Origin: Neoechinorhynchus agilis
Taxonomy: Eukaryota; Animalia; Acanthocephala
Assembly: GCA_051530055.1 (NCBI GenBank)
Contig: CM121341.1
Coordinates: 14,176,784 to 14,240,783 of the forward strand
Direction: 5' to 3'
Length of the DNA stretch: 64,000 nucleotides
The first letter of the stretch is position 1; every line of letters starts with the position of its first letter. This document shows positions 9,983 through 64,000 of this stretch, piece after piece. Below the pieces are notes generated by a model. It did not search any database. It was not told the origin of the DNA and worked only from the letters and a program-made list of their open reading frames with translations. The translations under genes were made by a program, and so were the position numbers.

Positions 9983-10024
9983 CATGTTTGGCTAGCCGGT
10001 TGCTTCTTTATTAGACGTTGAAGT

Positions 10025-12590: not shown

Positions 12591-12639
12591 TATCATTACA
12601 ACAACCCGACCGAGTGTCAATTAAAAAACAAAACTTTAT

Positions 12640-13065
12640 CCCAATAACCAATTTAATTATCAAGAGAAAATCCTTCGGGATGATAGAGTTGGAGATGTGG
12701 TTATTTTCTTGCCATTTGGCAAGCTGCTTATATTAATCAAGTGTTTTAACAGTCCTTACTCGTTTTTTTGCTCTGTGATATAAGCACCTAGACTGAAGCA
12801 TACGGCTTTGAGTTTGTACATCCCGCAGGACCATCAGATACTTCCAGGAGGCGGGGCGCATCGGTGAGTTTCCTCTCTTAATCGGTATTTCGTCCCCTTC
12901 GGTTGTGCGTTAAAGCAGGGATTTGGGGCTAAAGTCCATTGGACCACCTCAACAACTAACGGCAGATGAATGACGAGGCGAGGTTTCCTCAGGAAATATT
13001 TCGATCAAACGAAATATGATTTATCCGGGGATTATGATTACCACAACTTCAATAACCGATTTGCA
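12640..13065 (+). repeat. 160-nt hammerhead repeat unit split by ~240 bp that includes a family B copy (12790-12950, minus strand)
   Basis: Left half has atcaagagaaaatccttcgggatgatagagttggag. Right half has gatgaatgacgaggcgaggtttcctcaggaaatatttcgatc...gattatgattaccacaac. Confidence 0.8.
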
Positions 13066-18722: not shown

Positions 18723-19445
18723 TGTTTGTTCAAAAATTGAAATACGAATAACTCAGGAACTATGACAGCTATCGCAAATCTAAATACAGTTTTGGAATCA
18801 GCGAATCGAGATGTACTCCAATTTCCCAAACGTAATTCATCCAATAATTGTTAATAATATACTTAATTGGATAACACGAATCAATTCATTGGATCAGAAA
18901 TACCCACAATGACGTATAACGAAATACCAGATTAAATGCTTTATTCATTAAATTCAGGTGTCTTCTCTGAACCAGAATCGATGAAGCAATAGAAGAGATA
19001 AAAATAAAAACCCAAAACGGTATATGCAGCTGAAACGAACCTTAAAAGTTGATTTAGATAATGTAATTTAATTGGCAATGACAAATGTTTGTTCAAAAAT
19101 TGAAATACGAATAACTCAGGAACTATGACAGCTATCGCAAATCTAAATACAGTTTTGGAATCAGCGAATCGAGATGTACTCCAATTTCGCAAACGTAATT
19201 CGTCCAATAATTGTTAATAATATACTTAATTGGATAACACGAATCAATTCATTGGGTCAGAAATACCCACAATGACGTATAACGAAATACCAGATTAAAT
19301 GCTTTATTCATTAAATTCAGGTGTCTTCTATGGACCAGAATCGATAAAATAATAGAAGAGATAAAAATAAAAACCCAAAACGGTATATGCAGCTGAAACG
19401 AACCTAAAATGTTGATTTAGATAATGTAATTTAATTGGCAATGGC
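18723..19445. repeat. 363-bp direct tandem duplication
   Basis: tgtttgttcaaaaattg starts at 18723 and again at 19086; the units are nearly identical. Confidence 0.92.
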
Positions 19446-19524
19446 AACAATCGATTGCCAATTAAATTACCTTAAATATCATTGTTTGACGACTAACGAT
19501 TCGTCACAAAAATTTGCTTTTTAA

Positions 19525-32583: not shown

Positions 32584-34530
32584 ACTACAGCTATTCCAGA
32601 TTTATTATCGAACGGAAAATAGGTGCTTTATTTGTTTATTGCTTCAAATTTTCGACGCCTTGCGTCTTCGTCAGGAAGCTTTTCTTCGGTTGTCTGAAAA
32701 GGAATCAGAGGAGGGCAACGCTGTCCGTCAGCTCATCCCTCTTATTGAGCATCCCCTCTGCCTCGTTGTGTCCGTCCTTGCTGCTCGTAACCCCGCTCAA
32801 TCCCACTACTTTCTCACGATTAATGCATAGCGCTTCGGCAATCGAGAGATCCACCGGATCGGATGCCTTGTGCATCACCTCAATCTCGAAGGCTGGGCTG
32901 GCACCAACGTGAGAGGTAGCGAAATGGGTAGCCCATGGGGTCGACCGGTATGACGGAGCTGTCGGATTGCGCGCATTACGCACGTGTTCCGTCACACGTG
33001 AACGTAATGTTCTTTCCGTCTTGCCAACGTAGGACGTTGTCCGTCCTTCGTCCTTGCATAGCCGGCACAACATCCTATATACTACGCATGTTGATTGGCA
33101 AGACGGTCCGAGGAATCGTCCTTCCTCGTTCCTTGAAGGGCTGCAATGGTGGCACATCAGACATGCCTTCGGACAACGATTTTGATCCTCATGGTGCTCG
33201 GTCTGCGTCAAAATCTGTCTGAGTGATGGCCCTATCCTGTGGACAACTCGCGCTTTTAACTTACATTTCAGCAATGCTTTCTTGACTTCGGTCGTGAATC
33301 TTTCATCGACGAATGGCACTTTTAGGACTGGTAGACTTTCCTCTGCTAGTCTACTTCGTCGATCGAATCTTTTCTCTTTTTTCCTCGCACCAGCCGTCAA
33401 CCTGGTAATGTCCTTGCTGGAATACCCATTACCAGCGAACAGTCGCTTTATCCGCTCCTCCGCCTCGTGTTTTCCATGATCCGTCGAAGCACATATCCTT
33501 GCTGTTTTCCACATTTCTGTGAAGATAGATTGCTTGATGATCCATGGATGGTGAGACTCACGATGAAGGACCAGATCTTTCTTGCATGGCTTCCTGTACC
33601 ATGTTCTTGTTATTGGGTTATTCACCATAAAACAGAGGTTCAGGAACGGTAGATAGTCACTTGGTTTATCCCGAGTAACCTTGATGCGACCTGCTAAATC
33701 CATTGAATTTAGCTTTTCTTCGATTGTGTCGACCTCAATATCCTCGTGGTAGGTTAGCAGCACATCATCCACATATCGGAGATAGATTTGACTCGACGAA
33801 AGATGTGGAAAAATGTGCTGCGCCTCTAAGCCATCGAGGAATAGATTAGCCAAGACTGGCGCGAGACTGTTACCCATCGAGAGACCACGGACTTGACGAT
33901 ACAGTTGATTTCGGAATCGAAAAAGGTTGCATTGTAGGACCAGACGTGTGAGCATCAACACATCACAAGGTTCCATTCCGAACAGGTTTGTCCGACGTTC
34001 TTGCAACTTCCTGGCCAATGTATCAATTGCGGCTTCAGTGTCGACATTCGTATATAAGCTTTGGAAATCGAAGGACATCACTTTAGATCGTTGCAGGATA
34101 TCTTGCCTCGATTCCAATGTTTCTGTTAGTCCGCGCGTATTTTTAATGTATGCTGGTCCATCTCCAACCAAAGGAGCCAACATCTTGGCTAGCAGTTTGG
34201 ATATCCTATATGCTGGTCCATTTATTGTAGATACAATTGGTCTGCATTTGAGCTGGTCTCCTCTCAATAAGACCTCCGGCATCTTATGGGTCTTTACCAT
34301 CGCATATAGAACTGGAGTACGTAAGGGCCCTTGGGTAAATGCGTGCATTCTCGTAAGGTTCCTACGCGTGACTATCCTGCGAAAAGCTTCGTTCAAACTG
34401 CATCGTTTCTCATCGGAATCATCCTAAGCAATAAACAAATAAAGCACCTATTTTCCGTTCGATAATAAATCTGGAATAAACATGAGGGTGTTGGGAAAAG
34501 AGGCTTTCCATAATATACTACAGCTATTCC
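32584..34530 (-). mobile_element. 5'-truncated Neptune-like Penelope element with a short inverted terminal piece and 14-bp TSD
   Basis: Open 563-aa RT (YVDD) plus Cys linker and GIY-YIG (VVY...YVGKT..R.TEH). 34426-34478 is an inverted copy of the 3' terminus. ACTACAGCTATTCC at 32584-32597 and 34517-34530. Confidence 0.95.
32641..32679 (-). ncRNA. Minimal type I hammerhead ribozyme, intact core
   Basis: GCUUC CUGACGA A GACGC aag GCGUC GAAA AU U U GAAGC: 5-bp stem I, 5-bp stem II and palindromic AAAUUU stem III. Confidence 0.9.
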
Positions 34531-37061
34531 TAGGAAAACCATTCGCCTTTCCAGCCGAGACCCACATTGAATGTCCCCTTTCTTGAAAATTCTCCAAATA
34601 ACGGTGAATAAAGCATACTACGCATGTAATCCCAATTTCCCCCACCTTCAATCCTCCCTTGCGCATCACATTCTCAAATCGCGCAAAACTTTTCTTACAT
34701 ATAAACTCGCCTCCTCTCCCACTCACCTCTGGCAGGAAAAGCGCCGTAGGCCCAACCTCTCAAACTTTGACATCCGTGCTACACCAAACTCCATCAATGC
34801 ACAACTTTGTGACTCTCACTCGAACAGAAACAAACCATCATCGCCTTCCAGATCTACATCACTGTTCTCGGCTTTCTACAGCTTCACCTCCCATGATTTC
34901 CACGTACGATATTCTCTTGCTTCCTCGGAAACTACCACGCAAATCATATCTTAACTATCTAATTCTCAACTGGGCTCCACGCTTTATTATGCCAGATTTA
35001 ATTGATCCACTTGCTCATATAATCAACCAAAGTTTCAAGACCGGAATCTTCCCTAGTTGCCTCAAAACAGCTCGGGTAACCCTGCTCCCGAAAGCAGGTA
35101 AACTTATATCCACCTCAAGTTTTCTACCCATCTCTATATTACCTTCTTTCGCTAAAATCTTAGAGAGATGCTTTAAAGCACACCTTCTGCAAACCTTCAA
35201 TCGAAAAATTCCACCTACTTTGCATTTATGACACACTCCTATGTAACGTTGACAATATTTCCACCCATGTCACCCGTCTCATTCAACTTGATTTATCCAA
35301 AGCTTTCGACTCAGTTGACCATTCACTCCTTCTCCGGATCAGCTCTGATTTTGGTATCCGCTGGCTCGAATCTTATCTTCACAATCGCAAAGAATACATT
35401 TACAGCCGTTCTACCTCCTCTATCAGAATATCCATCACCAAAGGCGTACCTCAAGGTGTTGTGCTGTCACCACTTCTTTTTAATATTTTCCTAAACGACA
35501 ACAAACCTCCCTCCTCTCACTCTGAACTTTTCTTCTATGAGGACGATCAATCACACGCTCCACCTGAATTTCTATAAATGCGTCAAAATGTTCCCCTAAT
35601 TCTCACGCAACCCCAGATGCCTTTTGGAGTTTCGATCGCACCACTCATCTTCCAACGCTACACGAGTGATTTACTGTATGGGATCCCTGGGGTGGCCGTA
35701 TATTTAGATGATATAGTCATAACGGGAGTTGATGACCGGGTACACTTGGAAATCTGAAAAGAGTCACGGAGAGATTACGAAACGCAGGGATCAAGGCCAA
35801 AAGAGAAAAATGCGTCCTTATTGAAAGACGAGTTATGTTTTTGGGTCATATCCTCGAATCGAACCAAATCAAACCAGATGAAAATAGAATCGAGACCTTG
35901 AAAAAGATGAAGACGCCCTCAAGTGTATCAGAACTTCGAACTTTCTTGGGCGGGGTGAATTTCTTAGAGCGTTTTGTACCGCATCTACAGAAGAAATGCG
36001 CACCATTGTACAAGATGCTGAAGAAGGGAATGAAATGGTCATGGAACGCGGAAGCAAACGATGCGATTGGTGCAATTAAGGAAGCGCTGGCAACGGCTCA
36101 GGTACTAGTACCATTCGATGGACGAAAAGATCTACGTCTCATGTGAAAAAGGATTGGGGCGGTATTGCTGCAAGAAACGGATGAAGGATCTTTCAAACCA
36201 GTAGCGTATTGTTCGAGAGTACTCAGGCCAGCGGAACAGTGATACGCTCAGATAGAACGAGAAACGTCGGCGCTCGTCTACGGGGTGACGAGATTTAACT
36301 ACTACCTGATGGGACGATTTTTCAACCTTGTTAGTGACCACAAGCCCCTCTAATATATTTTCGGCGAAAACAGGAATCTGCAGAAAATGTCGAACCACCG
36401 AATTGTGCGCTCGGCGATCTTACTGTCGCAATATGATTATAAATTGCAGCACATACATGGGAAAGACAATATGGTAGCGGGCATCTTGTCTCGATTTGAC
36501 ACTGAAGAAGACAAGGAAATGGAGGAGTTGAGCGCGATAAATTTAATTCGGAACGAGATAAGTGACCAACTATCATTATCTTTGGAATCTGTCGAAGAAG
36601 AAACCAATAGGGATAAATACCTACGAACAGTTAAAAGGTTCGTCGAAACTAACTGGCCAAACAAAGTACCGAGGGATTTGGAACGCTTCAGGAACAGCAA
36701 GAACGAGTTGGCTGTTGAAGGAGGTATCCTAATGATGTCTGGGAGGATAGTGATCCCGAACACATTAAGAAAAGCAGCGCTAGAAACGTTACATAACTTT
36801 CATCCGGGGATGGTCGCGATGAAAAGCATGGCGCGATACTACGTGTGGTGGCCGAATTTGGATGGTGACATTGAAGAATGGTTCAAGCGGTGTACTCAGT
36901 GTCAGGACAATAGGGCTGCGGACCCTCCTCATGCATTAAGCGAGTGGAGTATACCCAGCGAGAATTGGGGTTACTAAGCGCTACTTGGTTGTTCAGCCGC
37001 ATGTTTTATCTAGTGATGATTGTTTGATAGACAATCCGACTGAAAAATATATTTTATTAAA

Positions 37062-37100
37062 ACACCAAGCTTTCGCCGTCCAACGGCTTCTTCAGGGTGT
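37062..37100 (-). ncRNA. Minimal type I hammerhead ribozyme, intact core
   Basis: ACACC CUGAAGA A GCCG uugga CGGC GAAA GC U U GGUGU, with palindromic AAGCUU stem III. Confidence 0.9.
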
Positions 37101-38704
37101 AATCTGCAATGCGAGTGGAGTGGAGGTTTACAGGAGATTCATGACGGCAGACAACTCATCCTTCTGGTTAATGAGTGTCCTACCGACCGACCGATGCCCG
37201 CTAGAGTCCTCACGATCCCGGGTCTCTCGGGAGATGATCAGCGCTTCCGCTATCGACAGCTCGACGGGATCCTGCGCTTTGTACATTATGCGCGTGGATA
37301 GTCGAACTGTTCCATCCGGGTGGACTCGCGAATAATGTTTCGCCCACGGTGTCGTCACATACGATTGCGCACTTGGGTTCAACGAGTTTCGTACATGCTC
37401 GGTTACTCTTTGGCGAAGTGGCCTTTCGATTTTGCCCACGTACGTGACCAAGTGGTCACGGTCAATCCGACACCGTTCACACCGGATCTCGTAAACCACA
37501 CTGCTCTGATCGCACATCTTCCAGTCACGATCAACTGCTTGCTGACGCTCCTCGTCCATCCTCGCACCTGCTGCGTATCTGCACATTAGGCACGACCGAG
37601 GGCATTGCTGATGATCCTCGTGATGCCTCGTTCTCGTCAGCATCCTCCGCAGCGTTATACACAATCTGTGCACATTACCCACATTCAATCCCGCTTGCCT
37701 GAGCAGTACTTTGACTCTCTTCGTGAACATTTCACTCGCGTACGGAATTCGTAGGATCGGCCTATCGTCTTTTCGTTCACTCATGGGTCCAACGTCCCGT
37801 CTAATTCTATTTTCCACTTCTCGCTGGAACCCTTCGATCTCCTCTGTCGAATATCCGTTGTCCGCGACGATCTTGTTTACTGCTTCCACCGCTCCACGCT
37901 TCGCTTCCAACGTCGATGAGCAGGTGGTTGCCGATTTATGCATACCAGCGTATATCGCCGCTTTCATCGCCCAAGGATGGTGAGAATCTCGGTGCATCAC
38001 AATCGACTTCCTGCATGGCTTTCGATACCAATTGAAGTTGGATACATCGTCGGATTTGAAGCGGAGATTGAGGAATGGCAGGTAGTCCGAAGGTTGGTCT
38101 CTCGTAGCCTGAATCCTCCTATTCGAGTCCATTGAATTTAATAGTGACTCTGAAGGTCAGCAACACATCGTCCACATAGCGGACGTAAACTTGACTCGAC
38201 GCTAAATGTGGATAGATGTGCTGTCTTTCCAGGTCATCGAGGTAGAGGATGGCCAATACCGGAGCTAAACTATTTCCCATTGCAAGACCACGAACTTGCT
38301 TATATAGCTGGTTTCGATAACGAAAAAGGTTGCGCTTCAGTACCAATCGTGTCAGACCAATAACATCGTCTGGAAGTAGACCGAAGAGGTCAAGATCCTC
38401 ATTCTCCTTCAACCTTTTCTCCAGCGCACGTACTGCTCCCTCGTTGTCCACATTGGTGTACAATGCTACGAAATCAAAAGACATTACGCGACTGTTGGTC
38501 AATTCATTCTGTCGCAAGCGCAGGATCCCGTCGAGCTGTCGATAGCGGAAGCGCTGATCATCTCCCGAGAGACCCGGGATCGTGAGGACTCTAGCGGGCA
38601 TCGGTCGGTCGGTAGGACACTCATTAACCAGAAGGATGAGTTGTCTGCCGTCATGAATCTCCTGTGAACCTCCACTCCACTCCACTCCACTGGCATTGCA
38701 GATT

Positions 38705-38743
38705 ACACCCTGAAGAAGCCGTTGGACGGTTAAAGCTTGGTGT
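38705..38743 (+). ncRNA. Mutated hammerhead copy in the inverted pLTR
   Basis: Identical to 37062-37100 except CGGCGAAA is changed to CGGUUAAA (G12 lost). Confidence 0.8.
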
Positions 38744-39729
38744 TTTAATAAAATCTATTTTCCAGTCGGATTGTCTATCAAACAATCATCACTAGATAAC
38801 CAGCGAGAATTGGCAACGGGTACACATCGATTTCGCGGAACCATGTGATGGAATTACATATTTAGTTTTGGTCGACGCTTTGTCCAAATGGCCCGAAATA
38901 ATTCTGATGCGATCGACCAGTGCAAATAGGGTAGTTCGAGTGCTTAGGGAAATCTTTGCACGGTTTGGAATATCGCAAGAAGTTATCAGTGATAATGGGC
39001 CACCAATCACTTCGACCGAATTGAAGAATTTCCTGAAAGCAAAGGGAGTGAGACAAGGACGAATCACGCCCTACCATCCAAAATCAAATGGCTTAGCGGA
39101 GCGGATGGTGAGGACGTTCAAAGAGCGAGTCATTAAGGGAACTGCGATTGGAGACCGGTCACTGCGACTTCAACAGTTTCTGATGAGTTACAGAAACACA
39201 TCCATACCTCGACAGAAAAATCGCCGGCTCAAATGATGTTTGGACATCGATTGGCCTCAGTGTTAGATAGGATTCGCCCGACCAGTCAGTCAACAGCTCA
39301 ACGAGCACACCTGAAGCAAAAAGAACGACTCGATCGGAGAGCGAAGCCACGGGAATTCCGAACGGGAGACAACGTGCGGTTCCGCAGAAAAAAAGGCGAA
39401 TCACGGAAGGAAGGAGAAGTGACGAGCAGGCAATCGTGGGCACTAATACGGATGGAGATGTCAGAGTGCACGCCGATCAAATGAAACCCAGGATAGGCCC
39501 AGCAGACGAAAACGAAGAGACGCCGCAGAGGGAATTAACAGAAGCCGAAGTGCCACCGATAAAAGTGGAAGGCGAGCAGGAGGAATGGACAGAAATACTA
39601 TCGTTTTAAGCCAGTTTTATATTTTATAATGTTGGAAAATAATTTTTTAATATTTTGCAGCGCTCAAAGCAGTATCTTGTATATTGAAGCTTCCTTATTT
39701 AGCGATATCTTTCGCGAGGAACGTTTCTT

Positions 39730-41464: not shown

Positions 41465-41514
41465 GATTTAATCTATAATGGATTTGTATATTATCTTCGG
41501 GGGAAATGATGCTT

Positions 41515-41720
41515 TCTTTTGGTAGTTATACCGGATTTAAATTGACGAATTTATTACCAATATTTCACGTCGGATAATCCCGACATTACCAAGGTTTGAC
41601 TCACGCAGTAAATAACTTATAAACAATGACAAACCTTAATATAATGTCGGAATTAGGCGACGCGAAATATCGGCAATAAATTAGTCAATTTAAATCCGGA
41701 GTGTTATAACTACCAAAAGA
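41515..41720. repeat. Foldback family C hairpin (~90-bp imperfect arms)
   Basis: ttttggtagttata-ccggatttaaattgac...ccgacatt..aaggttt is inverted relative to aaacctt..aatgtcgg...gtcaatttaaatccgg..tataactaccaaaag. The same arms occur at 49539 and 51559. Confidence 0.85.
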
Positions 41721-42837
41721 AATTATAATAGGTATCTTTTAAACTAAAATTGAGATAATTATTATCTTTTCAATGATTTTGAAACATTGTACACATGAAT
41801 GCTATCTTAACGTAATAAGAAAATTCAGAACAAATTCCAATCATAATCCCTTAGATCGGAGGATGCGACGTCGAAATACTAACACTAATTGAGGTTATCC
41901 TCAATTTCTCAGCAACGTAGAATGGTACTGTTAATAGCGGATCGAAATTTGTCGAGTAAAAATATGCGGTGGTGGGAAAAATTATATCAAAGAATGAATT
42001 ATATTGAAACATTTCGTCTAATCGCACTGGGCTTCTTCAGTCAGGTATCTAAAAAGGAATTCGGCAACTTCATTACTCATGGAATTTATCTTCAACGAGT
42101 AAAAATAGACATATTATGTCAAGGAACAACGATTCGGGGAAAAACGAATGGAATGGAGATAATCACTACTACAAAAGTGCAAGCAGATTTTCTATGATGG
42201 TTGTGTGAAATTTTCGATCAGGTTTTTATATTAATGTTGCCAAATGTAGAGAAAAATAGACAAAATGCAGAGAAATTGAAGGCTGAGATATAAGCTATTT
42301 CTAAAGAGCGCCGTGCTCAATTGCTAAGTAGTTCAAAAAATAAATCCAGGTTTTAATACCATAAGTTTAGAACAACTTAAAAGAAGATTTTCAAACGTCA
42401 TTGTGTCAAATGGCAACGAAATTTTCAATTAGATGCGCTAGAGCAACTCCAAGTACTTCGTTTTAACTTTCTTGAAGACAAATCAATTTAGACAGCTTAA
42501 TCGTACATGGTTCATAATATAGTATTCGAATTCTCAAAATGGTCTCGAATTTCATCTATAATCATGCCAAAGATAGTTTACGGAAAAATCTTAAACAAGA
42601 GTTAGTTAAAAATCGTCTACACACAAGTCGGTTGGGACTTTGAAGACCAATGCAAAAGGAGCTCTGGTAAAAGTCCTTAACGGTGATACAAAAAGACTGG
42701 GACTGACGACCGCAACAACCGTCAATTCTCATATCATCGCCTAGTTTTACCATGGAGACCTCAGTAAAAATCGTGGGGGACTTAGAGACCTCATCCTCTG
42801 TTATTTTATGAATGGAAAGCAATATAATAAACAAAGT

Positions 42838-46862: not shown

Positions 46863-47339
46863 TGTTTTAAATGGGAACCGAGAATGTGTGCAATAAGAGC
46901 GAGCACGAAAACGCGTAAGTCTGCCCCATGTTGATGTGATCTGAAAGAATTTAAAATACTGTGACGCAAATTGGTGAGCAATCATTGGAATTAGATACGT
47001 CTGGTCAAAAAATAATCCCGGCCATAACATATTTGTCGATAAGTATTGGATTATTTTTTACCATACGCGGCTGTGCGGCTGAGCCACTCATAATAATACT
47101 ATAAAACATATTTTGCTTCCAATGAATCAAATATGTTATGACATATGGATTATTTTCACCAAAAGTATAGTTAAAGATAAAATCCATGAGTATGTGAAGG
47201 TGGGGAAAATTATATATGTAAGAATCGCTTTAATTGAAATATTTCGTCCAATCACGTTGGGCTTCTTTAGTCAATTATCTAAAAATTGATTTAGCAACCT
47301 CATTGTCTTATCAGAAGGTATCCTCAACTTTAGGGAATA

Positions 47340-49200
47340 ATCTATATTGTTTCCCTCGAAAATATTGGTTCTCTGAATGAACATGGCCTCGATAATAACA
47401 CGCTCAACCTTGTGGTCATTGCGTACCAACAAATATCCGTCGTTAATATCGGGCCCGTATTCAGAGAGTGGGAAACCACAGGGGAGTTCGTGTCATGTTT
47501 CCTCAGTGAATAGCGATGTTCCCTTATCCTCCTCCCAAAGTTATTTGTCTGGCCAATATAGTAGCGATCACAATCCGAGCAAGGTATTTTATATACCGCA
47601 CCACTTGGGCTGTCACGAATGCTCGGACAGATCAGGTCATGAAGATTCTTCCTTCGTTTGGAATAGACGAGCGTACGTTTGCTCTGGTGGCCTGCCCATA
47701 GGACCCTGGATAAATTCTGATAGGAGGAATCGTCAATAAACGGCAACTCAAGAAACACACGATCCTTATTTGATGTCACGACTGTCGGCCTCCCAAACCT
47801 AGCGCTCCTGATCACCTTCCTATGCAGATTCAACGGATAACCCATCCGTTCTGATAAATCCATGATAAAATCCAGTTCATGTTTGAGGTCAGTACTCGAG
47901 CTGCAATAAGCAAAAGCTCGTTGTACCAATGATCTAACCCTGGAGATCTTATATTCTCGTGGTTGAGAGGAAATCCATGGTACCATGTCATGTGGAATAT
48001 TGATTTTCCGATAAACCTTAGTCATATATTCATCTCCACCAACACGATCTATCGCAACATCAAGGTAACTGAATTTACCGTCAGTCTCAACATCCGTCGA
48101 CCATTGAATGTGTGTATCTTTAGTGTTGAGGTAGTTCTGCACGTGCATGGAGGCATAGGCAGAACATTCAAGGAGAATAAATGTGTCGTCCACATATCGG
48201 ACCCATAATGAGATTCCAGGAATTGTGGGTAGGTATTTATCTTCCCACTGGCGCATGTATAACTCCGCAAGCACCGGTGCAAGAGGGCTGTCCATCGCTA
48301 CACCATTCACCTGATCAAAATCCATTCCCTCAAATTGGAAGTTCGAAATTTTGGTGCAAAAACTCAAGAGTTAATCAGTGATCGAAAGCTTCCAATTATC
48401 ACAGGCCCGTAGGATAGGTATAGCCAGTTCAATAGCAGTATCTACTGGAAAATTTGTGAATAATGAAATCACATCAGCCGATACCATGATAGAACGCGAG
48501 TCCCACAACGTCTTAAGTCGACCAATGAAATCCTTTTCGGAGCATACTACATTTGCACTCCGTTCCATTCTCTGACGAAGCATCAGAGCCAGTTTCCTAG
48601 ACAAACTTGTGCAAAATGATGTATGAGCCGCAGCTATTGGTCTGAACTTAATCGGACATTTGTGTACCTTGGCCAACAGGTACATTATCGGTGTCCTAGA
48701 GTTCACGGACCTAACTGCCCAGTAGTCAGCACTCTCAATTTTATTTTGCTTCATCAGCTTCAGTAGGAATGCATTGAATTCCTTTTCCCGTTTTTGAGTA
48801 GGACAAACCTTAAGACGCTCGAACTCACTTGCCGTTAATATCTTGAAACCAGCCTCTTGATACTGTTCACGATTAGTAACGCAATATCCATACCCTTTAT
48901 CAATCTTCACCGGTACAATGTCATGGATTCCCTTTAACAATTCTATGCCTCTCTGCATTCTCCTTGATATGTTGGAATATAATGATCCATTGTGTACCAG
49001 CTAATCGTAATAGCGTTCCATCATCCAGAGGGGTATACTCAAGTTCTCTTTTACAGCTCTGGTTGCTAAGCCCTCCAGCTTTGGAGCAGTATACGGAACA
49101 AAGTCGGGCTTGTCCTGGAGGATTTTCTCTGTCGATGATTGAGATTATAATTGGAAGGCCGCAGATTTCGAATTAGACAACTGTGAGATACCGTTGATTT
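47340..49200 (-). mobile_element. Penelope-like element (Poseidon/Penelope-type), near full length, frameshifted
   Basis: PDFVPY, IVPVKIDKGYG, GVAMDSPLAPVLAELYM, WVRYVDDTF, GAVYKIPCSDCDRYYIGQT...RIREH. Confidence 0.92.
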
Positions 49201-49635
49201 CAGTTTCAAATAGGGGATCCTGGATGACTCAATAGCATTTTATTGAATTCGCGATGGAATTTAACGAAATTTCATTGTTTCTAAACAAAAAAGTGAGAGC
49301 GCAATTCTGATCTTTGCAGAATCATGGCGGTTTTATTCTAGTATCTCAAGATGGCTTGAAGAATTAAGTTACAAAAGAAAATTGTCATTCTTCACATCGT
49401 AAATAAGCTTATTTTCAGAAAACTCATTTCTTAAAGATTGTTTCTAGAAAGGCCGATGTTCTTTTAAAACTCTTTAATAATGGGGTGCTTAAAATTTAAA
49501 GTGTGATCATAATCAACCGTATACTCAAAAAATTACCCCCGGATTTAAATTCATAGATTTATTGCCGATATTTCGTCGTGTAATTCCGATATTATCAAGG
49601 TTTATCATCTAAAATACTAACACACAAGTATATTT

Positions 49636-49714
49636 TTGGTGAAAATAATACCGGTCATAACATATTTGATTTATTTGAAATATTTCGCGAGGTAGCCTTG
49701 CCTCCTCAGTCATC
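49636..49714 (-). repeat. Solo copy of the hammerhead repeat, minus strand
   Basis: gatgaCTGAGGAG gcaag gctac ctcgc GAAATATTtcaaataaatcaaatatgttatgaccgg matches 54373-54445. Confidence 0.75.
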
Positions 49715-49993
49715 AAAAAAGTGGGTTTTACACATTAAGGTTTTATGCTCGAATGCGCGGGATCGCCAAAGCCGAAGTACGTGGAACATGAATCCGCTCG
49801 AATCCCCTTACGTTTTTCCCATTAATTTTTTGTATCGGTTTTCAACACGTCGCTGGCTGGAGGTTTCAAGCTAAAATTAGCTTTATTTCCTTCCATTGTG
49901 TTAGACACAGCAACGTGCAGAGCCTCCAAAACAAGACGCCTTTTTAAGTTTTGCTTCTTTTTCTAGAAAGTTCGTGTCGCCAAAATCCGTGCG

Positions 49994-51450: not shown

Positions 51451-51784
51451 GCCAATGAGGAAACAATAGTGCTCTTCTTGAGAGGTTTCAGTGGACAAAG
51501 AGTCCAGAAACGGGGGTTTCTCTATCATATCGGATAATAACTAGTCTACAGCATAACACTTGTGTGTTAGTATTTCAGATGATAAACTTTGATAATGTCG
51601 GAATTATCCGACGAAATATCTGCAATAAATGTATAAATTTAAATCCGGGTGGGGATAACTACAAAAAGAAGGTATCTTTTCCCCCTAAGATAATAATTAT
51701 CCAAGAAAATATTTAATTACATTCAAATATTTCGAGATTAAGCATAGCTTCATCAGTCATTGCATCGCGAAATATCACTCAATA

Positions 51785-52460
51785 ATATGTGTTTTATCCA
51801 GGGATTATGATCACCAAAACTCCAATAAACAATTTATTGATCGAGGGAAAATCCTTCGGGATGATAGAGTTTATGGTGTTCATAATCTTGATGGATAACT
51901 GATGAGGCGAGACTCACTCGCAAAATATTTCGATCCAATGAAATATGTTTTATCCGGGGAATGCGATCTCACAACTCCAAAAACCAATTAAATCATCAAG
52001 AGAAAATCCTTCGGGATGACAGTGTCGGAGTTGTAGTGATCATAATCATGGTGGATGATTGATGAGGCGAGGCTTCCTCGCGAAATATTTCGATCCAATG
52101 AAATATGATTCATCCGGAAGATTATGATTACCAAAAACTCAAATAAGCAATTAAATCATCAAGAGAAAATCCTTCGAGATGACCGAGTTGGAGTTGTGGT
52201 GATCATAATCTTGATGTATGACTGATGAGGTGAGACTTCCTCGCGAAATTTTTTGATCAAATGAAATATGTTTTAACCGGTGGGATTATGATCATCACTA
52301 TTCCAGTAAACAATTTAATCGTCAAGAGAAAATCCTTCGGTATGATAGAGTTTGTGGTGATCATGATCCCGGCAGATAACTGATAAGGCGAGGATTCCTC
52401 AAGAAATATTTCGATTCAATGAAATATGCTTTATCCGAGGATTATGATCTCATAACTTCA
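51785..52460 (+). repeat. Tandem array of ~160-nt hammerhead-containing units (4 cores)
   Basis: Cores start at 51899, 52059, 52222 and 52380 (spacings 160, 163, 158). By-eye consensus: GGAUGA CUGAUGA G GCGAG acuuc CUCGC GAAA UA U U UCGAUCC. Confidence 0.9.
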
Positions 52461-52549
52461 CCCCGAAGTATTTTCACTCAATGGTTATCTCATTTATGAT
52501 TGAAGAGTGTTTATTTTACAAAAAATAATTCTCTTCGTAGGTGTGATTT

Positions 52550-53602
52550 TCACTGGAATGAGCCAGCAGATCCGGCGAGAAGTGAATCGAACAACGTATT
52601 CGCTGGGCGCGCTTCGTAGCAAATTTCATAGACGGCAACGAACAAAGGATATCGACTAACAGCCTCCCGTTCCTTCAAAAGAGTAATAACTTCCTTTGCT
52701 GTTGAAGGACCTTGAAGTTTTTGTCCATTTAACATCTCGGCTTCTAATTGTTCAATCGATTTCTTTTGCTTTACGAACGCACTGGCAACTAATCGGTTTC
52801 TGCCTCCATAGCACGTAGCGACCAAATCTGCGATTCCACAGCTTTCAAGAAAGACACTTGTGTCATGATCGGGGAACATGAGTTTCGCTAGATTCACCAT
52901 TTCAACGAAACCGATTCGAATAATGGCAGCTTTCGTGTTATCTCCATATCCTAAACCGTCAACGAATCCGACGGCCACTGCTACAATATTCTTTAAAGCT
53001 CCACATAGTTCAGCTACCTGGGTCGAAGTAGTTGTTGAAAGTCGGAAATAGTTTGTTTCAAATAATTGTTGAAGAAGCGCGGCGTGATCGTGATGTGCGC
53101 AACCAATCGTGCTCTCACAAAATTTCTCAGCGGCTACCTCGTTGGCAATGCTTGCGCCCATCAATACATGACAAGGGATTTTAAGTGTTTGTTCAATGTA
53201 ATGGCTAATAAGATTCACGGATCCGTCGTCTGTGGTCAAAAATCCTTTACATAAAGACACGGCGAACGAATTGGGCTTAACCGCATGTTTAAGAACTTCG
53301 CATTGTCTTACAAGGAATTGATGAGGAATGACAATAATGAAAATATCAGATTGGCGAGCTACGTCAACCAAATCAGTCATTGCTACCACATTATCTGGGA
53401 TCTTGAATCCAGGTAAATACTTAGGATTCTCGTGATCTTCATTGATGATATCACTAAGGCGGCGGTTATCGTGTATTTCGTCGTAAACGTACATCCTAAC
53501 TGTCTGCTTAAATGTTTCGGCGAATCGCTTTACATTTTGAGCGGCTATTCTAGCGATCGCGGTGCCCCAATTTCCACCACCAATCACGCTTACTGATAGC
53601 AT
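52550..53602 (-). CDS. GPD1: NAD-dependent glycerol-3-phosphate dehydrogenase, intronless
   Basis: VIGGGNWGTAIA, HENPKYLPG, VIPHQF, LCKG, ELCGALKN, GYGDNTKAAIIR, ESCGIADLVATCYGGRNR, LNGQKLQGP. Confidence 0.96.
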   Translation of the reverse strand: MLSVSVIGGGNWGTAIARIAAQNVKRFAETFKQTVRMYVYDEIHDNRRLSDIINEDHENPKYLPGFKIPDNVVAMTDLVDVARQSDIFIIVIPHQFLVRQCEVLKHAVKPNSFAVSLCKGFLTTDDGSVNLISHYIEQTLKIPCHVLMGASIANEVAAEKFCESTIGCAHHDHAALLQQLFETNYFRLSTTTSTQVAELCGALKNIVAVAVGFVDGLGYGDNTKAAIIRIGFVEMVNLAKLMFPDHDTSVFLESCGIADLVATCYGGRNRLVASAFVKQKKSIEQLEAEMLNGQKLQGPSTAKEVITLLKEREAVSRYPLFVAVYEICYEARPANTLFDSLLAGSAGSFQ

Positions 53603-54140
53603 CGCAAACAACACGACAGTTGTCTAAAAGAGAGAAATAATAAAAAGCAAGGACGGTTAAACAATTTTAAGCGTGTTGTGTATGTGGTCGGTATGCATTT
53701 CGTAGACGCTTTCATATATAGAGACGCAAATAGGATTATGCACTTTTCCCTCAAGGACTAGGACAAAAAGATTTATGAACAGACGTAGTCTTTACAGTTC
53801 AAGGAAATTTGATGAGGCCGAGGAAGTATTTTATTCCTGAAGATATGCAAAAGTATTTTTTTACGAGAGAAAGGATATCACTCTTAAACTTCCAGTTGGA
53901 TTCAATATACATTATCAAGAAATGATCAATGTACAGAAACACTAAAGAGTATGTCATTTGGGATAATTTAGTCGTAGTTCCATAGTTGGATAGCCGAAAC
54001 TTTAAAATCTCAGAGGGAGTACCGTATAATACCTCATGAAAACAATTTTATTCTCACAGATCAAGAAAAATGTCAGCGATTCTCTTTATAATACTTCTGA
54101 GTTCTAAAAAATGGCTCACACGTACAACTGTACATTCCCC

Positions 54141-54510
54141 AAAATCATCAAGAGAAAATCCTTAGAGATGATCGAGCTGGAGTGGTGGTTATCATAATCT
54201 TGATGGATGACTGATGAGGTGAGACTTCCTCGCGAAATTTTTTGATTTAATGAAATATGTTTTATCCGGAAGAGTATGCTTAACACAACTCCAATAACCA
54301 ATTAAATAATCAAGAGAAAATCCTTCGAGATGATAGAGGTGGAGCTATGGTGATCATAATCTTGATGGATGACTGATGAGGCGAGACTTCCTCGCGAAAT
54401 ATTTCAAATAAATCAAATATTTTATGACCGGGATTATTTTCACCAAAAGTATAATCAATTAAATCATCGATGAAAAATCCTCCGACATGATAGAGTTAAA
54501 GATGTGGAAG
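54141..54510 (+). repeat. Second tandem array of the 160-nt hammerhead repeat (2 cores)
   Basis: Cores at 54211 and 54373 (162-nt spacing). The 54373 copy has an intact core, stem II and AUAU palindrome. Confidence 0.9.
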
Positions 54511-55550: not shown

Positions 55551-57050
55551 TTATTGAAAGGGTTCTTGTTCTCCTACATTCGTTTGCTCGAATTCAATAC
55601 TGTCGATAAATGAGAGAATCAAAGTATCGTTACTCCGACTATGTGGATGGAAAGATGGAACCAAGATTCAGAAAAAATTACAGACCTCTTGTATATGTCT
55701 CGGCACGTGATTTGGCCATCTTTTTTCGTATTGCGCTCCTGAACCGCATCAAGAATGGAATACAAGAATCCATCGGTGCTTGGCATCATTGACTGATTAG
55801 AACAGTCTACGAGCCTCTCACAGATTCCCTTTTTTTATGGATTAAGGAATATCTATCGAGTTGAAGAAGCGTACCTTATAGAAAATTCGGATGTCATTTG
55901 GGCCTATGTATCCGCGACCGAAAGTGTCAAGTATGCGGAAAAAATATTTTATGGACCGTTCATGTTTGAGATGCAATAAAGCCAAACGGAAATCGACGAA
56001 TCTTGGTAAATCAAACACTCTTTGTTCCAGATTCTTCAGCTTCTTGCAATGTCTATATTTCTTTTTTGAACTTGGAAACAAATACTCGTTCCGGCGGAAC
56101 ACTTCGGATCTTGTTACTCCGTACTCTTGGAATAAGCAATCCGTGAATTCGCGAGTAAAAGCAAAGTCGCTGTAACTAAAATAAACGGCGTGGACTTAAG
56201 CACTTGAAAGAAATTACAAATGACCGAAAGATATGTAATTTTCAATCAGTAAGAAACTTCAGAAGTATTCACTTCATAATAAAATCATTTGATTTCGTTG
56301 TTCTTTTCGAATACTTTAGATTCAAATAAAAAATAATTTTAAGCGTTGAAGTGAGTATCCGACACGGCTGATTTTGGGCACGCGGCTCATCGATTTTGGC
56401 CAGGAAAGCGCATCAAATCACTTAATGCCCTAGAACAGGCTCAAAGATGTCGAAGTCGTCTAGTTGACTTGAGTCCGAATCCTTGTTTCAGGGTAAGAGT
56501 GTTAAAATCCACGATCGCTGATGACTCACAACCAAAGGGGCGAAATACCGGTGAAGGGAGGAAACACATTGTTGAGTCCCGCTCTCTGGAGGTATCTGAA
56601 GACCCGGAGGGATGTAAAAAAACTCGTAATCCTATAGCTCCGTATATTGAGTGATTTTATGAGCTTCCTTGAACCAAATCGGTTGGCTTTGTTCCCAAAA
56701 ATCAGCCGTGCAGGGTATTTCATACGTCTAGCCACGCACGTGAAAAATAATATAAAACAATATTGGTAAATTCGGATTCGCGACCGTAGAGCTAATACTG
56801 TTGCCAATTCAGTCCAGGTGAAATACTTATTAATCATCAAAATTAAATTCAGAAACTAACTTTAAGATTTCGTCTCTTTCAATAAATCCATCCCTGTCTT
56901 TATCCAATTTTTCATATTCTTTAAGGATAGCTTTAAAATTGCGGTATGTAAAGAAATTGTGGGTAAGCTTCTTCTCAGCAGTGGTATCGGCCTCCTTGAC
57001 TTGCTTGACTTCTCGTCTTGCTTTTGTGTAGGCATCGAAAAGCTATGAAA
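55551..57050 (-). CDS. PP2A regulatory subunit B''-type EF-hand protein (PPP2R3C-like), 3' exons
   Basis: Exons read KEYEKLDKDRDGFIERDEIL, FTREFTDCLFQEY, RFVDFRLAL..LKHERSIKYFFRILD, ILDAV...ITCRDIYK and FIDSIEFEQ, ending at TAA 55551-55553. Confidence 0.7.
56363..56655 (+). repeat. Family B copy in an intron of the B''-like gene
   Basis: acacggctgatttt...ggccaggaaagc...aatcacttaa, then gagtcccgctctctggaggtatctgaagacccggagggatgta, matching the other family B copies. Confidence 0.75.
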
Positions 57051-62369: not shown

Positions 62370-63565
62370 AGCTATTCGGCTTTTTTCTTCACTTCTACGA
62401 TCATAATGTGAAGTAGGTTCACCTTGTCTTAAAATCCCAGGTCGACCAAATGAATGAAGTCTATCTTGGCCATCGTTGCTTAAATTAACTCTATTGATAA
62501 TTAAAAATTCGATTTATAATGATTTCTTAAGCTTACTCCTTAGGTTCATTTCTTGACAAAAAATTTCGCTCTTTCGGTTGCGCGAACGTTCGAGGTCTAT
62601 ATTTATCAGATAATTTAATTTCTAGCACTTTACCATATCTCAAACGTTTCGTTTGTGAACCTATAGCGTCGATAAGTTGATTCCTTATAGAAAGTAACAC
62701 AATAAAACTTACCTCCATCATTTTGTTCAAACCTCGGAGGATTATGACATGAGGAAACTATCAATATTAGGGCAAGTATCGCAAGGTTAAGCATTTCTGG
62801 GGTGTTTGTCTGAGCAATCAAAATTTTAAAGTTGTTACTGTTCCTAACCTTCTATATATTAAGGGCGACAGATTGATTTGACGTAAAAGTGTAGTAGGAG
62901 GCAAAAGATTGAAACTTCAAGAAGGAACTATGAGGAGTGCCACGAGTAATGGTTTTAGTGATTTACGATTTTATTACCACAGGCGACACTTAAGTCTTTA
63001 TGCTTTAAACCTCTCGTGTCGATTTCAGAATATCAAGATCAATTCAAATATAAGCTAAATGATTGGAAGCTCTGAAATATTTTTTAATAGATACGAGGTA
63101 CAAAATTGATTTTCATACTTATTTCAGGGCTTATTTAACAGTAGAAAAATTGCAACTCCTCGAATTAGTTTGTTACAGTACTTGGTAACCTAAATTCTAT
63201 TACTTTAAACTCTTGGAACATGGTCGAATATTTCTACATACGACAAACAATGCACTGGTAAACAATATAAATAATTTGTTCGAAATTCTTTGCGGAATAC
63301 CAATGCTTCATAATTTCATTAGAACTTATATTTAAATCAACCTGATTAAATGATCACCTTTTTACATGTAGCTTAGATTCGATAACCATTGAAGACTTTG
63401 AATGTTCCAATTAATGTACGTTTATTTTATCTTATATAATATAAACACGTTTTATTAATTAAGAAGAACGATCCATACACTTGCTAGCATCTATCTTTGC
63501 TGAAGGTGTCTGGATGTCGGATGTTGAGGCAGGGAGGTCTGGATGTCAGATGTTGAGGCAGGACC

Positions 63566-63823
63566 GCGGATTATTTTCCTCTGGCATACAGCTCGCCTAC
63601 CTGGGCAGGAAAGCTATTGAATTACTTAAACTCTTAACCATACGGTTATGAGTTTTATGCATCCTTCCGGATCTTCAAATACGTCCCGAGGAGACGGGAC
63701 TCATCATCTGAAGATACGGAAGGATGTACAAAACTCATAACCTTATGGTTTATGGTCTAAGCGATTCAATCACGTTTCTTACCCAGATCGGTGGGTTGTG
63801 TGCTCCAGAAAAATTATTAGCCG
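63566..63823. repeat. Family B minimal hairpin element
   Basis: Inner 34-bp arms at 63636-63669 and 63717-63750 (3 mismatches) inside more degenerate outer arms. Preceded by a 29-bp tandem duplication at 63508-63562. Confidence 0.85.
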
Positions 63824-64000
63824 TGGAAGGGATGCTTACTTCACCACTTCAGATCTAGTCGATTAGATTTATTTACAACCTTGATAACGGCACAAGATTG
63901 TGCTGAAATATTGGAATCAATAAATTCTTTTAACTTTTAAGCCAGGTACAAGCATGAACAAGTCAATCTTCAAGCGCAGGTAAAAAGCAAAACGGGAAAA

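Follow-up and report, generated by a model that had tools for sequence, protein, structure and literature searches.

The 64,000-nucleotide stretch of DNA analysed here (the window) carries a short tandem satellite that is probably a decayed family of the non-LTR-retrozyme-like type: dead copies of a non-autonomous, non-coding repeat of ~162 nt, descended from Penelope-like elements (PLEs) and likely copied by them. We read it as a worn-out addition to the retrozymes, parasitic repeats that are already known, and not as an element of a new sort. The window presents a sequence family, a hammerhead architecture, a consensus fold, homology and adjacency to PLE ends, and decay of the copies.

The array and its repeat unit

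The source of the DNA is the acanthocephalan Neoechinorhynchus agilis. Non-coding tandem units of ~160 nt had been claimed at 51785-52460, and on both counts this was right: Tandem Repeats Finder (TRF) places array 1 at 51790-52449 with a period of 163, 4.2 copies and 78% matches (score 736), the units measure 158-163 bp (~162 bp in the consensus), and the longest open reading frame (ORF) is 48 aa, with ORFs that are not the same from unit to unit. BLAST with the consensus or a consensus dimer widens the limits of array 1 to 51765-52460, and GC is 37-39%. Weaker homology may reach further into the flanks of arrays 1 and 2. The coordinates of all features are collected in Table 1.

Table 1. Satellite features and related elements in the window (scores in bits are from R1, a covariance model whose only input was five PLE hammerheads of the window that lie outside the satellite)
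Feature	Positions	Strand	Basis and remarks
Array 1, ~4.3 units of 158-163 bp	51765-52460	+	TRF, BLAST with consensus dimer, unit alignment
Array 1, full units cut at predicted cleavage site	51930-52089 (160 nt), 52090-52252 (163), 52253-52410 (158)		
Array 1, partial end units	51765-51929, 52411-52460		
Hammerhead copy 1	51892-51937	+	Lesions G12 to A (AAAA for GAAA), stem I G2.2 to A; 11.9 bits
Hammerhead copy 2	52052-52097	+	Sole lesion C3 to U; stems I and II, GAAA and AUAU palindrome intact; 20.6 bits, E 0.016
Hammerhead copy 3	52215-52260	+	Core intact; stem II pairing kept via G-U; helix III AUUU, palindrome lost; distal stem I mismatched; 15.2 bits
Hammerhead copy 4	52373-52418	+	Lesions G8 to A, stem II 3' strand CUCGC to CUCAA (G10.1-C11.1 lost), G2.2 to A; sequence alignment
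Arm L (GGAGTTGTGGTGATCATAATC), at consensus sequence	52190-52210	+	Fuzzy pattern matches, pair counts
Arm L, further copies	~51865-51887, 52027-52047, 52348-52368, 54179-54199, 54341-54361		
Arm R (GATTATGATCACCAAAACTCC)	51803-51823	+	Fuzzy pattern matches, pair counts
Arm R, further copies	51959-51978, 52120-52141, 52284-52304, 52440-52459, 54272-54292, 13030-13050		
AUCC-UUCG-GGAU hairpin, intact	52006-52017, 51851-51862, 12670-12681	+	Sequence; mutated in the five other copies
Array 2, ~2.3 units (unit positions 63 to 109)	54142-54507	+	BLAST
Array 2 hammerheads	54204-54249, 54366-54411	+	17.2 and 22.2 bits (E 0.006)
Inverted partial unit (hammerhead domain, unit positions 128 to 40)	51689-51760	-	Head-to-head with start of array 1; BLAST, local alignment; 14.3 bits
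Split unit, left half (unit positions 43/51 to 113)	12629-12704	+	Begins at end of 5'-truncated PLE tail
Split unit, right half (unit positions 127 through hammerhead to 62)	12965-13061	+	~255-nt copy of another repeat family between the halves
Degenerate unit (unit positions 52 through hammerhead to 25)	9865-9981	+	
Hammerhead-domain fragment (unit positions 127 to 47)	49634-49714	-	~700 nt upstream of PLE ORFs 48958-47342(-); 17.9 bits
Satellite fragment (unit positions 158 to 47)	47108-47164	+	~70 nt past 3' hammerhead of PLE with ORFs 48958-47342(-); BLAST 84-87% identity, E 3e-12
23-nt satellite piece	47012-47034	-	
3' hammerhead of PLE with ORFs 48958-47342(-)	47232-47276	-	G5 mutated to A

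Hammerhead architecture of the consensus

The sequence supports the view that a minimal hammerhead of type I, of the sort found in Penelope elements, is encoded in the satellite consensus. It comprises stem I (GGAU-GA/UC-G-AUCC), CUGAUGA, an unpaired G, stem II (GCGAG/CUCGC), GAAA, the AUAU palindrome and U17. It contains the catalytic boxes (C3-U4-G5-A6-N7-G8-A9 and G12-A13-A14, with an A15.1-U16.1 pair and an H17 that is not G) together with the hallmarks of PLE hammerheads, namely an extra nucleotide after A9, G10.1-C11.1 and a palindromic helix III. The extra nucleotide is G in 9 of the 10 satellite hammerheads read and A in the degenerate inverted copy at 51720-51762(-). G10.1-C11.1 closes a helix II of at least 5 bp, and 93% of stem II cells pair across copies; stem I of the consensus has a bulged G, and helix I is open. 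Helix III (A-UA-U) lies inside a 12-nt palindrome, CGAAATATTTCG, and there is no loop 3, so the hammerhead would have to work as a dimer. In cofolding, two hammerhead domains pair via the palindrome, and an isolated domain folds into stems I and II. The palindromic stem III of the original prediction is thus present, with a self-complementary stretch of 12 nt in place of the AAUAUU assigned to it.

The consensus satisfies a strict descriptor of minimal hammerheads (min-HHR), and no single copy does, which bears out the two earlier claims that a minimal type I hammerhead is encoded in the consensus and that every unit is damaged, the consensus alone being intact. Across the whole window the descriptor has only three matches, all of them PLE-type hammerheads, and it finds none in 200 dinucleotide shuffles of 128 kb. 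The motif CTGATGAGGCGAG, with at most two mismatches allowed, occurs nine times in the window against an expectation of 0.89, a number reached in none of 100 shuffles. For hammerhead copy 2, cleavage is predicted between 52089 and 52090.

Arms, hairpin and RNA fold

The unit falls into two halves, a ~80-nt hammerhead domain and a ~80-nt domain in which two 21-nt arms close a small hairpin. Inverted arms of ~21 nt had been described as flanking the hammerhead in each unit; every unit does have both, and pairing is seen in 81% of arm cells, a share that drops to 29-52% once the partner column is shifted. The cUUCGg hairpin stands intact at exactly the three places originally given, but it is not the favoured fold: it overlaps and competes with a longer hairpin, AUCAUC/GAUGAU, to which RNAfold and RNAalifold alike give preference. 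The consensus RNA is predicted to form a rod (-58.6 kcal/mol, z -6.15), with the plus strand 10 kcal/mol more stable than the minus strand, and for the consensus this supports the rod-like unit RNA that had been proposed; the folds of individual units are degraded (z -0.03 to -3.5).

Decay of the copies

Substitutions per site amount to 0.113 in the catalytic core and 0.141 overall, and G-U replacements are as many as A-C replacements (11 of each). Stem covariation across copies, the want of which was named in the original prediction as a result that would speak against it, is absent among the ~10 copies available in the window: compensatory changes in the stems do not rise above those in shuffles, and the RNAalifold covariation term is +0.63. 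Because the core is conserved no better than the rest and covariation is lacking, we conclude that the satellite copies are decaying neutrally. No sign of selection at the RNA level is seen in them: the copies here are dead relics, and the inferred ancestor alone looks functional.

Association with resident PLEs

The PLEs that were expected alongside the satellite are there, in the same window and with the same hammerhead architecture. Reverse-transcriptase and/or GIY-YIG domains are encoded by the ORFs at 32705-34396(-) and 47342-48367(-), and further PLE sequence comprises a related stretch at ~37128-38132(-) and a degraded copy at 10854-12508(+). Min-HHR motifs stand just 3' of PLE ORFs (32640-32680(-), 37061-37101(-) and 47232-47276(-)), and the R1 model finds seven PLE hammerheads in the window; these have A or G as the extra nucleotide after A9, and between their families the stems diverge while pairing is kept. 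When PLE proteins were used to search for further genomic copies, a 341-aa piece had no match and a 563-aa ORF retrieved only distant PLEs of other animals; no N. agilis PLE proteins were found because the PLEs were masked before genome annotation. The published N. agilis RNA-seq is poly-A selected.

Satellite copies adjoin PLE tails and are split by later insertions. The PLE at 47.0-49.7 kb has a satellite fragment on either side, but the arrays are free-standing, and the hammerhead of that element at 47232-47276(-) has stem I UGA/UCA and the GAAAUAUUUC palindrome in common with the satellite hammerhead. The copy at 12629 begins at the 3' terminus of a 5'-truncated PLE; together with 9865-9981 the sequence at 12629-13061 is probably one old locus, split by a PLE and another repeat. 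The inverted partial unit that abuts array 1 has the same head-to-head geometry as that described for PLE insertions (PMC8557442). Copy ends cluster at unit positions 40-63, in or beside the rod loop opposite the ribozyme, with fragments starting at 127-128, and they do not coincide with the predicted cleavage site. No clear target-site duplications were found at the ends of arrays or copies, where likenesses were weak and non-significant (for example, AGTCTACAGCA versus AGTCTTATAGCA). Arrays 1 and 2 have the same orientation and bracket a glycerol-3-phosphate dehydrogenase (GPDH) gene, 52550-54037(-), which is intronless; strict alignments end at unit position ~55 and restart at 63, which is compatible with a single former array split in phase by the GPDH segment.

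Origin of the satellite

A different origin, unlikely if still a serious contender, is that of a PLE terminal-repeat minisatellite without a life of its own. The hammerhead domain would then belong to a PLE pseudo-LTR that truncated insertions left in place, and unequal crossing-over or segmental duplication would have multiplied it locally as DNA, bypassing any self-cleaved or circular RNA intermediate. A fragment with the hammerhead domain (unit positions 127/128 to 40-47) does recur alone three times, twice beside the same PLE-associated repeat, but the full 162-nt unit, including its ~80-nt rod/hairpin half, occurs in no PLE of the window. Similarly, all copies lie in the parts of the window that are rich in transposable elements, beside PLE tails, and the ~19 kb of gene-rich sequence to the right of the window holds neither satellite copies nor PLE hammerheads; set against this, the copies occupy separate loci with differing flanks and unit phases, which implies that the unit itself was dispersed. 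The leading unit of array 2 and the non-adjacent array 1 unit at 52090-52252 share 93% identity, whereas neighbouring units share 77-85%, which indicates duplication or conversion at the DNA level, and the copies' want of covariation and core conservation also suits a minisatellite; amplification of DNA alone does not account for the consensus rod or for the advantage of the plus strand. An origin of tandem repeats of this sort has been proposed in a 2026 preprint, in which retrozyme families of vertebrates showed homology to terminal repeats of the PLEs resident with them; its authors suggest that such families arose from truncated PLE ends and were then amplified in tandem (Li, Clavereau & Pollet 2026, 10.64898/2026.07.22.740005).

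An ordinary inverted-repeat satellite with coincidental hammerhead-like boxes is very improbable and close to refuted. Core or stem is broken in every copy, and the Rfam hammerhead models gave no match at the gathering threshold in the whole window or at E up to 10 in 51600-52600; Rfam missed the perfect PLE min-HHR at 32640-32680(-) as well, and because this control also failed (the test has no power for the min-HHR class) the negative result says nothing either way. The independent R1 model recovers the satellite motifs, eight of which are among the 24 best of its 29 matches in the window at E up to 10, the two highest of the eight reaching 22.2 bits (E 0.006) and 20.6 bits (E 0.016), each aligned in every core column. 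Coincidence is further opposed by the descriptor, which the consensus passes and which matches none of the 200 shuffles, and by the unusual extra nucleotide after A9 and the helix III palindrome, which are common to the satellite and the resident PLE hammerheads.

Domestication by the host, for instance as a structured element that serves the neighbouring GPDH gene in regulation or as its 3' flank, is scarcely credible: the two same-orientation arrays do lie ~90 nt from its stop codon and ~90 nt from its annotated start, but the units decay neutrally, the same satellite family occurs at unrelated sites, and the hammerhead strand is antisense to the gene.

Other repeats were considered as hammerheads. 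The repeat at 51558-51690, read with U3-A8, agrees with a hammerhead in its core, in stem II and in GAAA, but lacks stem I (R1 10.9 bits, E 6.5) and is at most a candidate; the repeat family at 8669-8748 and 56541-56620 was rejected, as its core positions differ between copies. A metagenome scan for GAAAATCCTTCGRGATGA returned 109 loci, all of chance size (at most 34 nt), and no relatives.

Comparison with known systems

Non-LTR retrozymes are arranged head to tail, from dimers to multimers, in units of 150-450 bp that each contain a single type I hammerhead; they are low in GC, have no ORF, LTR, PBS or PPT, co-occur with PLEs and give rise to abundant unit-length RNAs, linear as well as circular. 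Retrozyme-like repeats are on record for invertebrates of many phyla, among them the rotifers, to which acanthocephalans are most closely related (Cervera & de la Pena 2020, PMC7229834). The satellite resembles them in its tandem units of 158-163 bp (4.2 and ~2.3 copies), in its GC of 0.37-0.39 and lack of any ORF longer than 48 aa, and in the predicted high self-pairing of its consensus unit RNA and the co-occurrence of PLEs. It differs in that all copies here are defective, and its unit of 162 nt is slightly under the ~170-400 nt reported for non-LTR retrozyme RNAs. Most invertebrate retrozymes, moreover, have canonical hammerheads with a real helix III, loop 1-loop 2 contacts and efficient cleavage as monomers, whereas the satellite has the minimal PLE type.

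The hammerhead architecture of the satellite is identical to that of the PLE min-HHRs, which have CUGANGA, an unpaired nucleotide before stem II, G10.1-C11.1, GAAA, palindromic 15.2-16.2, U17 and a short open helix I, and which cleave poorly in vitro (Cervera & De la Pena 2014, PMC4209133). Within a genome, families of PLE min-HHRs covary and change in compensation in their stems, which the satellite copies do not, and it is as dimeric or multimeric transcripts that PLE min-HHRs cleave themselves. Those motifs lie in the terminal repeats of a coding element of 2-4 kb, whereas in the satellite the hammerhead belongs to a short non-coding tandem unit with a rod/hairpin half. In amphibian satellite 2, axolotl retrozymes and schistosome Sm-alpha, helix III is too short to serve alone, and double hammerheads cleave in multimeric transcripts (PMC7229834, PMC4209133). 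They too are tandem or dispersed short repeats with an inadequate helix III; their units are ~330-350 nt with a helix III of 1-2 bp plus a loop, and their transcripts and cleavage have been demonstrated, whereas the satellite unit is 162 nt; as to sequence similarity between them, the comparison covered Rfam, with a negative result. Plant LTR retrozymes, with type III hammerheads in LTRs of ~350 bp on either side of a non-coding region with PBS and PPT, form a class to which the satellite (type I, no LTRs, a 162-bp unit) does not belong. Compared with the 2026 preprint, whose scope is vertebrates, mainly Xenopus (other organisms are outside it, according to its authors; 10.64898/2026.07.22.740005), the link between satellite and PLE is drawn here from a single PLE copy and from short modules in common, all within one window of 64 kb.

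Proposed life cycle

For the retrozyme-like reading, a life cycle can be drawn by analogy with published non-LTR retrozymes, and it is by this analogy that we infer cleavage, circularisation and PLE-mediated copying of the satellite RNA. In a tandem transcript, two hammerhead domains would be joined via the 12-nt palindrome CGAAAUAUUUCG, and the double hammerhead would cut after GAAAUAUU. The resulting unit-length RNA, with 5'-OH and 2',3'-cyclic phosphate ends, would be closed by tRNA ligase into a rod-like circle in which stem I is sequestered and the ribozyme is off; the PLE reverse transcriptase and GIY-YIG endonuclease might then copy the RNA into the genome as tandem insertions of more than unit length.

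A bolder reading, which is speculative and which we would not expect to hold in full, makes this the first case among invertebrates of a retrozyme-like satellite whose sequence links it to the hammerhead domain at the terminus of a resident PLE. It would then be a 'missing link', an obligately dimeric retrozyme of 162 nt with a minimal hammerhead and the smallest to date, and the clusters of copy ends (40-63) and fragment starts (127-128) would mark either a site where rolling-circle reverse transcription of a circular RNA is preferentially primed or a target preference of the PLE endonuclease for the satellite itself.

Implications

Retrozymes and PLE minimal hammerheads are both known, and the passage from one to the other has so far been argued for vertebrates only; in Acanthocephala neither had been described before. 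A short tandem repeat that carries a PLE-type hammerhead and has sequence in common with a neighbouring PLE hammerhead and PLE ends fits the birth of retrozymes from PLE termini. Annotation based on Rfam overlooks the whole class of PLE-type minimal hammerheads, and the consensus and a small covariance model can be used to survey the N. agilis genome and other Syndermata. The copies in the window are relics from which no activity is expected; live copies, should the genome contain any in other places, would provide a very small system for the study of dimer-dependent hammerheads and circular RNA formation.

The satellite family and its hammerhead motif

The satellite, a tandem repeat of about 162 bp, was delimited in its first array by Tandem Repeats Finder (51790-52449, period 163, 4.2 copies, 78% matches) and by BLAST with a consensus dimer (51765-52460); reading and unit alignment resolve this array into three full units with a partial unit on either side (full-unit borders were set by cutting at the predicted ribozyme site). 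The original prediction described a retrozyme-like satellite of ~160-nt units here, and its observations are confirmed: the array is recovered, the coordinates given for the hairpin are exact, every unit has the 21-nt inverted arms (L and R), and the hammerhead boxes CTGATGA-G-GCGAG...CTCGC-GAAA-TATT-TCGATCC are present, with the 13-mer CTGATGAGGCGAG (two mismatches or fewer) occurring nine times in the window against 0.89 expected. The family is larger than had been listed, and its further copies are given in the table.

From its sequence, the satellite motif is assigned to the minimal type I hammerheads of Penelope-like elements (PLEs), which lack loop 3. All of the non-random hallmarks of these hammerheads (Cervera and De la Pena, PMC4209133) are present in it, and cleavage is predicted to follow GAAAUAUU, which in one copy places it between 52089 and 52090. 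Rfam reported no satellite hammerhead, whether at the gathering score or with E relaxed to 10; in a 201-nt control search it likewise missed a perfect minimal hammerhead of PLE type that closely follows a PLE ORF on its 3' side (32640-32680(-)), and the negative result on the satellite therefore carries no weight. It detects none of the six PLE-type minimal hammerheads given in the table (stem I ~5 bp; CUGANGA; a single unpaired nucleotide; 5-bp stem II; GAAA; 4-nt palindrome; U17), most of which lie immediately 3' of PLE ORFs.

A strict descriptor (exact CUGANGA; 0-1 extra nucleotide; GAAA; palindromic 15.2-16.2; U16.1; H17; G10.1-C11.1; stem II of at least 4 bp; stem I of at least 4 bp with at most one bulge) found two standard-core motifs in the window, each directly after a PLE ORF, and one motif with a U3-A8 core at 9401-9441; 200 dinucleotide-preserving shuffles of the window yielded none. 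No single satellite unit passes this descriptor, and among satellite sequences the 162-nt consensus alone does so (stem II 6 bp; stem I 7 bp, one bulge). A covariance model seeded with five PLE hammerheads and no satellite copies, run over the window with filters off, matched its seeds, the satellite motifs (with all core columns aligned) and two further PLE hammerheads, at 38704-38744 and 12537-12577.

Satellite, hammerhead and associated features in the window (CM, covariance-model match)
Feature	Position	Strand	Remarks
Full satellite units, array 1	51930-52089; 52090-52252; 52253-52410	+	unit alignment
Second array	54142-54507	+	
Inverted partial unit	51689-51760	-	head-to-head with array 1
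Split unit	12629-12704 and 12965-13061	+	interrupted by ~255-nt copy of another repeat
Degenerate satellite unit	9865-9981	+	
Hammerhead-domain fragment	49634-49714	-	
Small satellite pieces	47108-47164; 47012-47034		
Satellite hammerhead	51892-51937	+	G12 -> A; CM 51893-51932, 11.9 bits, E 3.4
Satellite hammerhead	52052-52097	+	C3 -> U only; CM 52053-52095, 20.6 bits, E 0.016
Satellite hammerhead	52215-52260	+	helix III = AUUU, distal stem I mismatched; CM 52216-52257, 15.2 bits, E 0.44
Satellite hammerhead	52373-52418	+	G8 -> A; G10.1-C11.1 lost
Satellite hammerhead	54204-54249	+	helix III = AUUU; CM 54205-54247, 17.2 bits, E 0.13
Satellite hammerhead	54366-54411	+	stem I 3' strand replaced; CM 54367-54409, 22.2 bits, E 0.006
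Satellite hammerhead	12965-13007	+	C3 -> A, stem II broken; CM 12964-13007, 10.8 bits, E 6.9
Satellite hammerhead	about 9914-9962	+	stem II scrambled; A13 -> U
Satellite hammerhead	49673-49715	-	stem II A-C mismatch, stem I variant; CM 49673-49715, 17.9 bits, E 0.082
Satellite motif	51720-51762	-	CM 14.3 bits, E 0.79
Copy ends/junctions at unit positions 40-63 (examples)	9865; 12629/12641; 13061; 49634; 51689; 52460; 54142		
Fragment starts at unit positions 127-128	12965; 49714; 51760		
PLE ORFs (reverse-transcriptase and/or GIY-YIG)	32705-34396; 47342-48367	-	
Related PLE sequence	around 37128-38132	-	
Degraded 5'-truncated PLE	about 10854-12508, 3' terminus to 12640	+	tblastx-collinear with copies at 32.7-34.4 kb and 37.1-38.5 kb
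PLE-type minimal hammerheads	32640-32680(-); 37061-37101(-); 38704-38744(+); 42002-42046(-); 47232-47276(-); 12537-12577(+)		
U3-A8 hammerhead-like repeat family	51558-51690(+); 49538-49629(-); 41489-41597(-); 41626-41721(+)		
Short interspersed repeat family, ~250-300 nt	9990-10300(+); 12705-12960(+); 8554-8779(-); 56455-56620(-); 63563-63843		

Predicted RNA fold

The consensus unit is predicted to fold as a rod (minimum free energy -58.6 kcal/mol, versus -35.9 +/- 3.7 for shuffles, z -6.15; only -48.6 for the minus strand), in which the arms lengthen to about 30 bp through UUAUCC:GGAUGA pairing, the small hairpin is closed at one end and ribozyme stem II stays a separate hairpin; the actual units fold much more weakly (z -0.03 to -3.5). 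The cUUCGg hairpin originally proposed can form, but RNAfold and RNAalifold both favour AUCAUC/GAUGAU, an overlapping hairpin with pairs that are better retained among the copies. Taken alone (58 nt), the hammerhead domain forms stems I and II (-13.8), and two such domains pair (-33.8) via CGAAAUAUUUCG, a perfect palindrome of 12 nt with helix III at its centre. In the predicted folds GGAUGA, which is also the 5' strand of hammerhead stem I, is contested between rod and ribozyme, the arrangement that would be expected if multimers may cleave and the monomer is suppressed.

Drift of the copies

Each unit had been said to carry a lesion, and every hammerhead copy is indeed damaged; relative to the consensus, the catalytic boxes carry 0.113 substitutions per site and the sequence overall 0.141. 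In the rod, the hairpin and both hammerhead stems (I and II), 84-88% of the cells pair, versus 12-62% with slid partners. Covariation among the copies is not above that of shuffles (for the rod set, the observed values are equalled or exceeded in 406-414 of 500 shuffles), RNAalifold assigns a covariation term of +0.63, and G-U and A-C replacements are equal in number (11 each). On these measures the structure is a property of the ancestral sequence, and the DNA copies in the window have drifted neutrally. Stem covariation, put forward originally as a check, thus finds no support among these copies, which at about ten are too few for judging the whole family.

Association with PLEs and copy ends

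A 3' hammerhead (47232-47276(-)) belongs to the PLE whose ORFs span 48958-47342(-); it has the GAAAUAUUUC palindrome and the UGA/UCA beginning of stem I in common with the satellite, and differs from it in stem II. Satellite pieces (84-87% identity, E down to 3e-12) lie just past this hammerhead and about 700 nt upstream of the ORFs. The split unit at 12629 starts a few bases at most from the truncated PLE's 3' terminus (PLE at 10854-12640), as placed by alignment of three PLE-tail copies. The satellite copies at 9865 and 12629 appear to derive from a single older locus of two units, which this PLE and another repeat later split. The inverted partial unit adjoining array 1 is similar to the truncated copies in inverted orientation that typify PLE insertions (PMC8557442). 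About 19 kb of gene-rich flank on the right-hand side of the window contained neither PLE hammerheads nor the satellite.

Satellite copy ends and junctions with inserted elements cluster at the loop end of arm R, over ~24 nt (positions 40-63 of the consensus unit). The starts of three fragments fall at positions 127-128, exactly on the 5' edge of the hammerhead domain; none of the copies in the window ends at the predicted cleavage site. The clustering fits preferential priming at one site of a circular template; it also fits an endonuclease preference for that stretch of the satellite.

The U3-A8 hammerhead at 9401-9441(+), with UUGAUAA instead of CUGAUGA (a covariant core described for schistosome PLEs), scores 40.8 bits as a seed of the covariance model. 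A separate repeat family carries a hammerhead-like core and stem II (UUGAUAA-U-GUCGGA-AUUA-UCCGAC-GAAA-UAU-C) with no convincing stem I (covariance model 10.9 bits, E 6.5); two of its copies, 91% identical, adjoin satellite hammerhead fragments, and those at 41.5-41.7 kb form an inverted pair.

Host genes and other repeats

The ORF at 52550-53614(-) matches, at 100% identity, an annotated glycerol-3-phosphate dehydrogenase (GPDH) of Neoechinorhynchus agilis (Acanthocephala) on a 19.4-Mb chromosome record of GCA_051530055.1; RCC1, GH31, NAC and PDZ are ordinary animal genes also in the window. The GPDH gene (52550-54037(-), segment 52461-54141) is flanked by the two satellite arrays, which share an orientation; since array 1 stops at unit position ~55 and array 2 begins at ~63, the segment may have been inserted into a single older array. 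Its coding sequence is apparently intronless from the ATG at 53599, and comparison with the Pomphorhynchus orthologue makes the annotated N-terminus (MSVS plus an upstream exon) look like an artefact of the gene model.

One copy of the ~250-300-nt interspersed repeat lies within a satellite unit and another adjoins a different unit; a hammerhead reading of this family was considered and rejected. Other tandem repeats occur at 18723-19447 (363-bp unit, 2 copies, 96% identity) and 8168-8387 (91-bp unit, 2.4 copies, 82%). An integrase-core (rve) ORF at 26950-27804(-), together with long direct repeats at 26582-27064, 30732-30868 and 35214-35512 (spaced 3.8-8.6 kb), suggests that a retroelement of the LTR type is nested amid the PLE copies.

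Comparison with retrozymes

Non-LTR retrozymes were defined as tandem repeats of 150-450 bp that bear type I hammerheads; they are GC-poor and non-coding, their unit RNAs are self-paired, their linear and circular transcripts are abundant, and they co-occur with PLEs. Retrozyme-like repeats are reported across many invertebrate phyla, rotifers included (PMC7229834). The satellite agrees with this class in its sequence-level criteria; its 162-nt unit is at or below the lower size limit, and its hammerhead is the minimal PLE type, whereas invertebrate retrozymes usually have the canonical loop-loop type. The minimal type depends on dimers, and its activity in published in vitro tests is weak. 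A 2026 preprint (10.64898/2026.07.22.740005) shows homology between vertebrate retrozymes and PLE terminal repeats, and states that other animals were not examined; the N. agilis genome paper, with poly-A-selected RNA-seq, makes no mention of PLEs, satellites or ribozymes.

The original interpretation is supported in part. There is good ground for classing the repeat as a retrozyme-like hammerhead satellite related to PLEs; the copies in the window are relics, and the RNA life cycle is a putative one, drawn by analogy. The satellite is of interest chiefly for linking PLE termini with retrozymes in an invertebrate, and standard RNA-family annotation overlooks its class.
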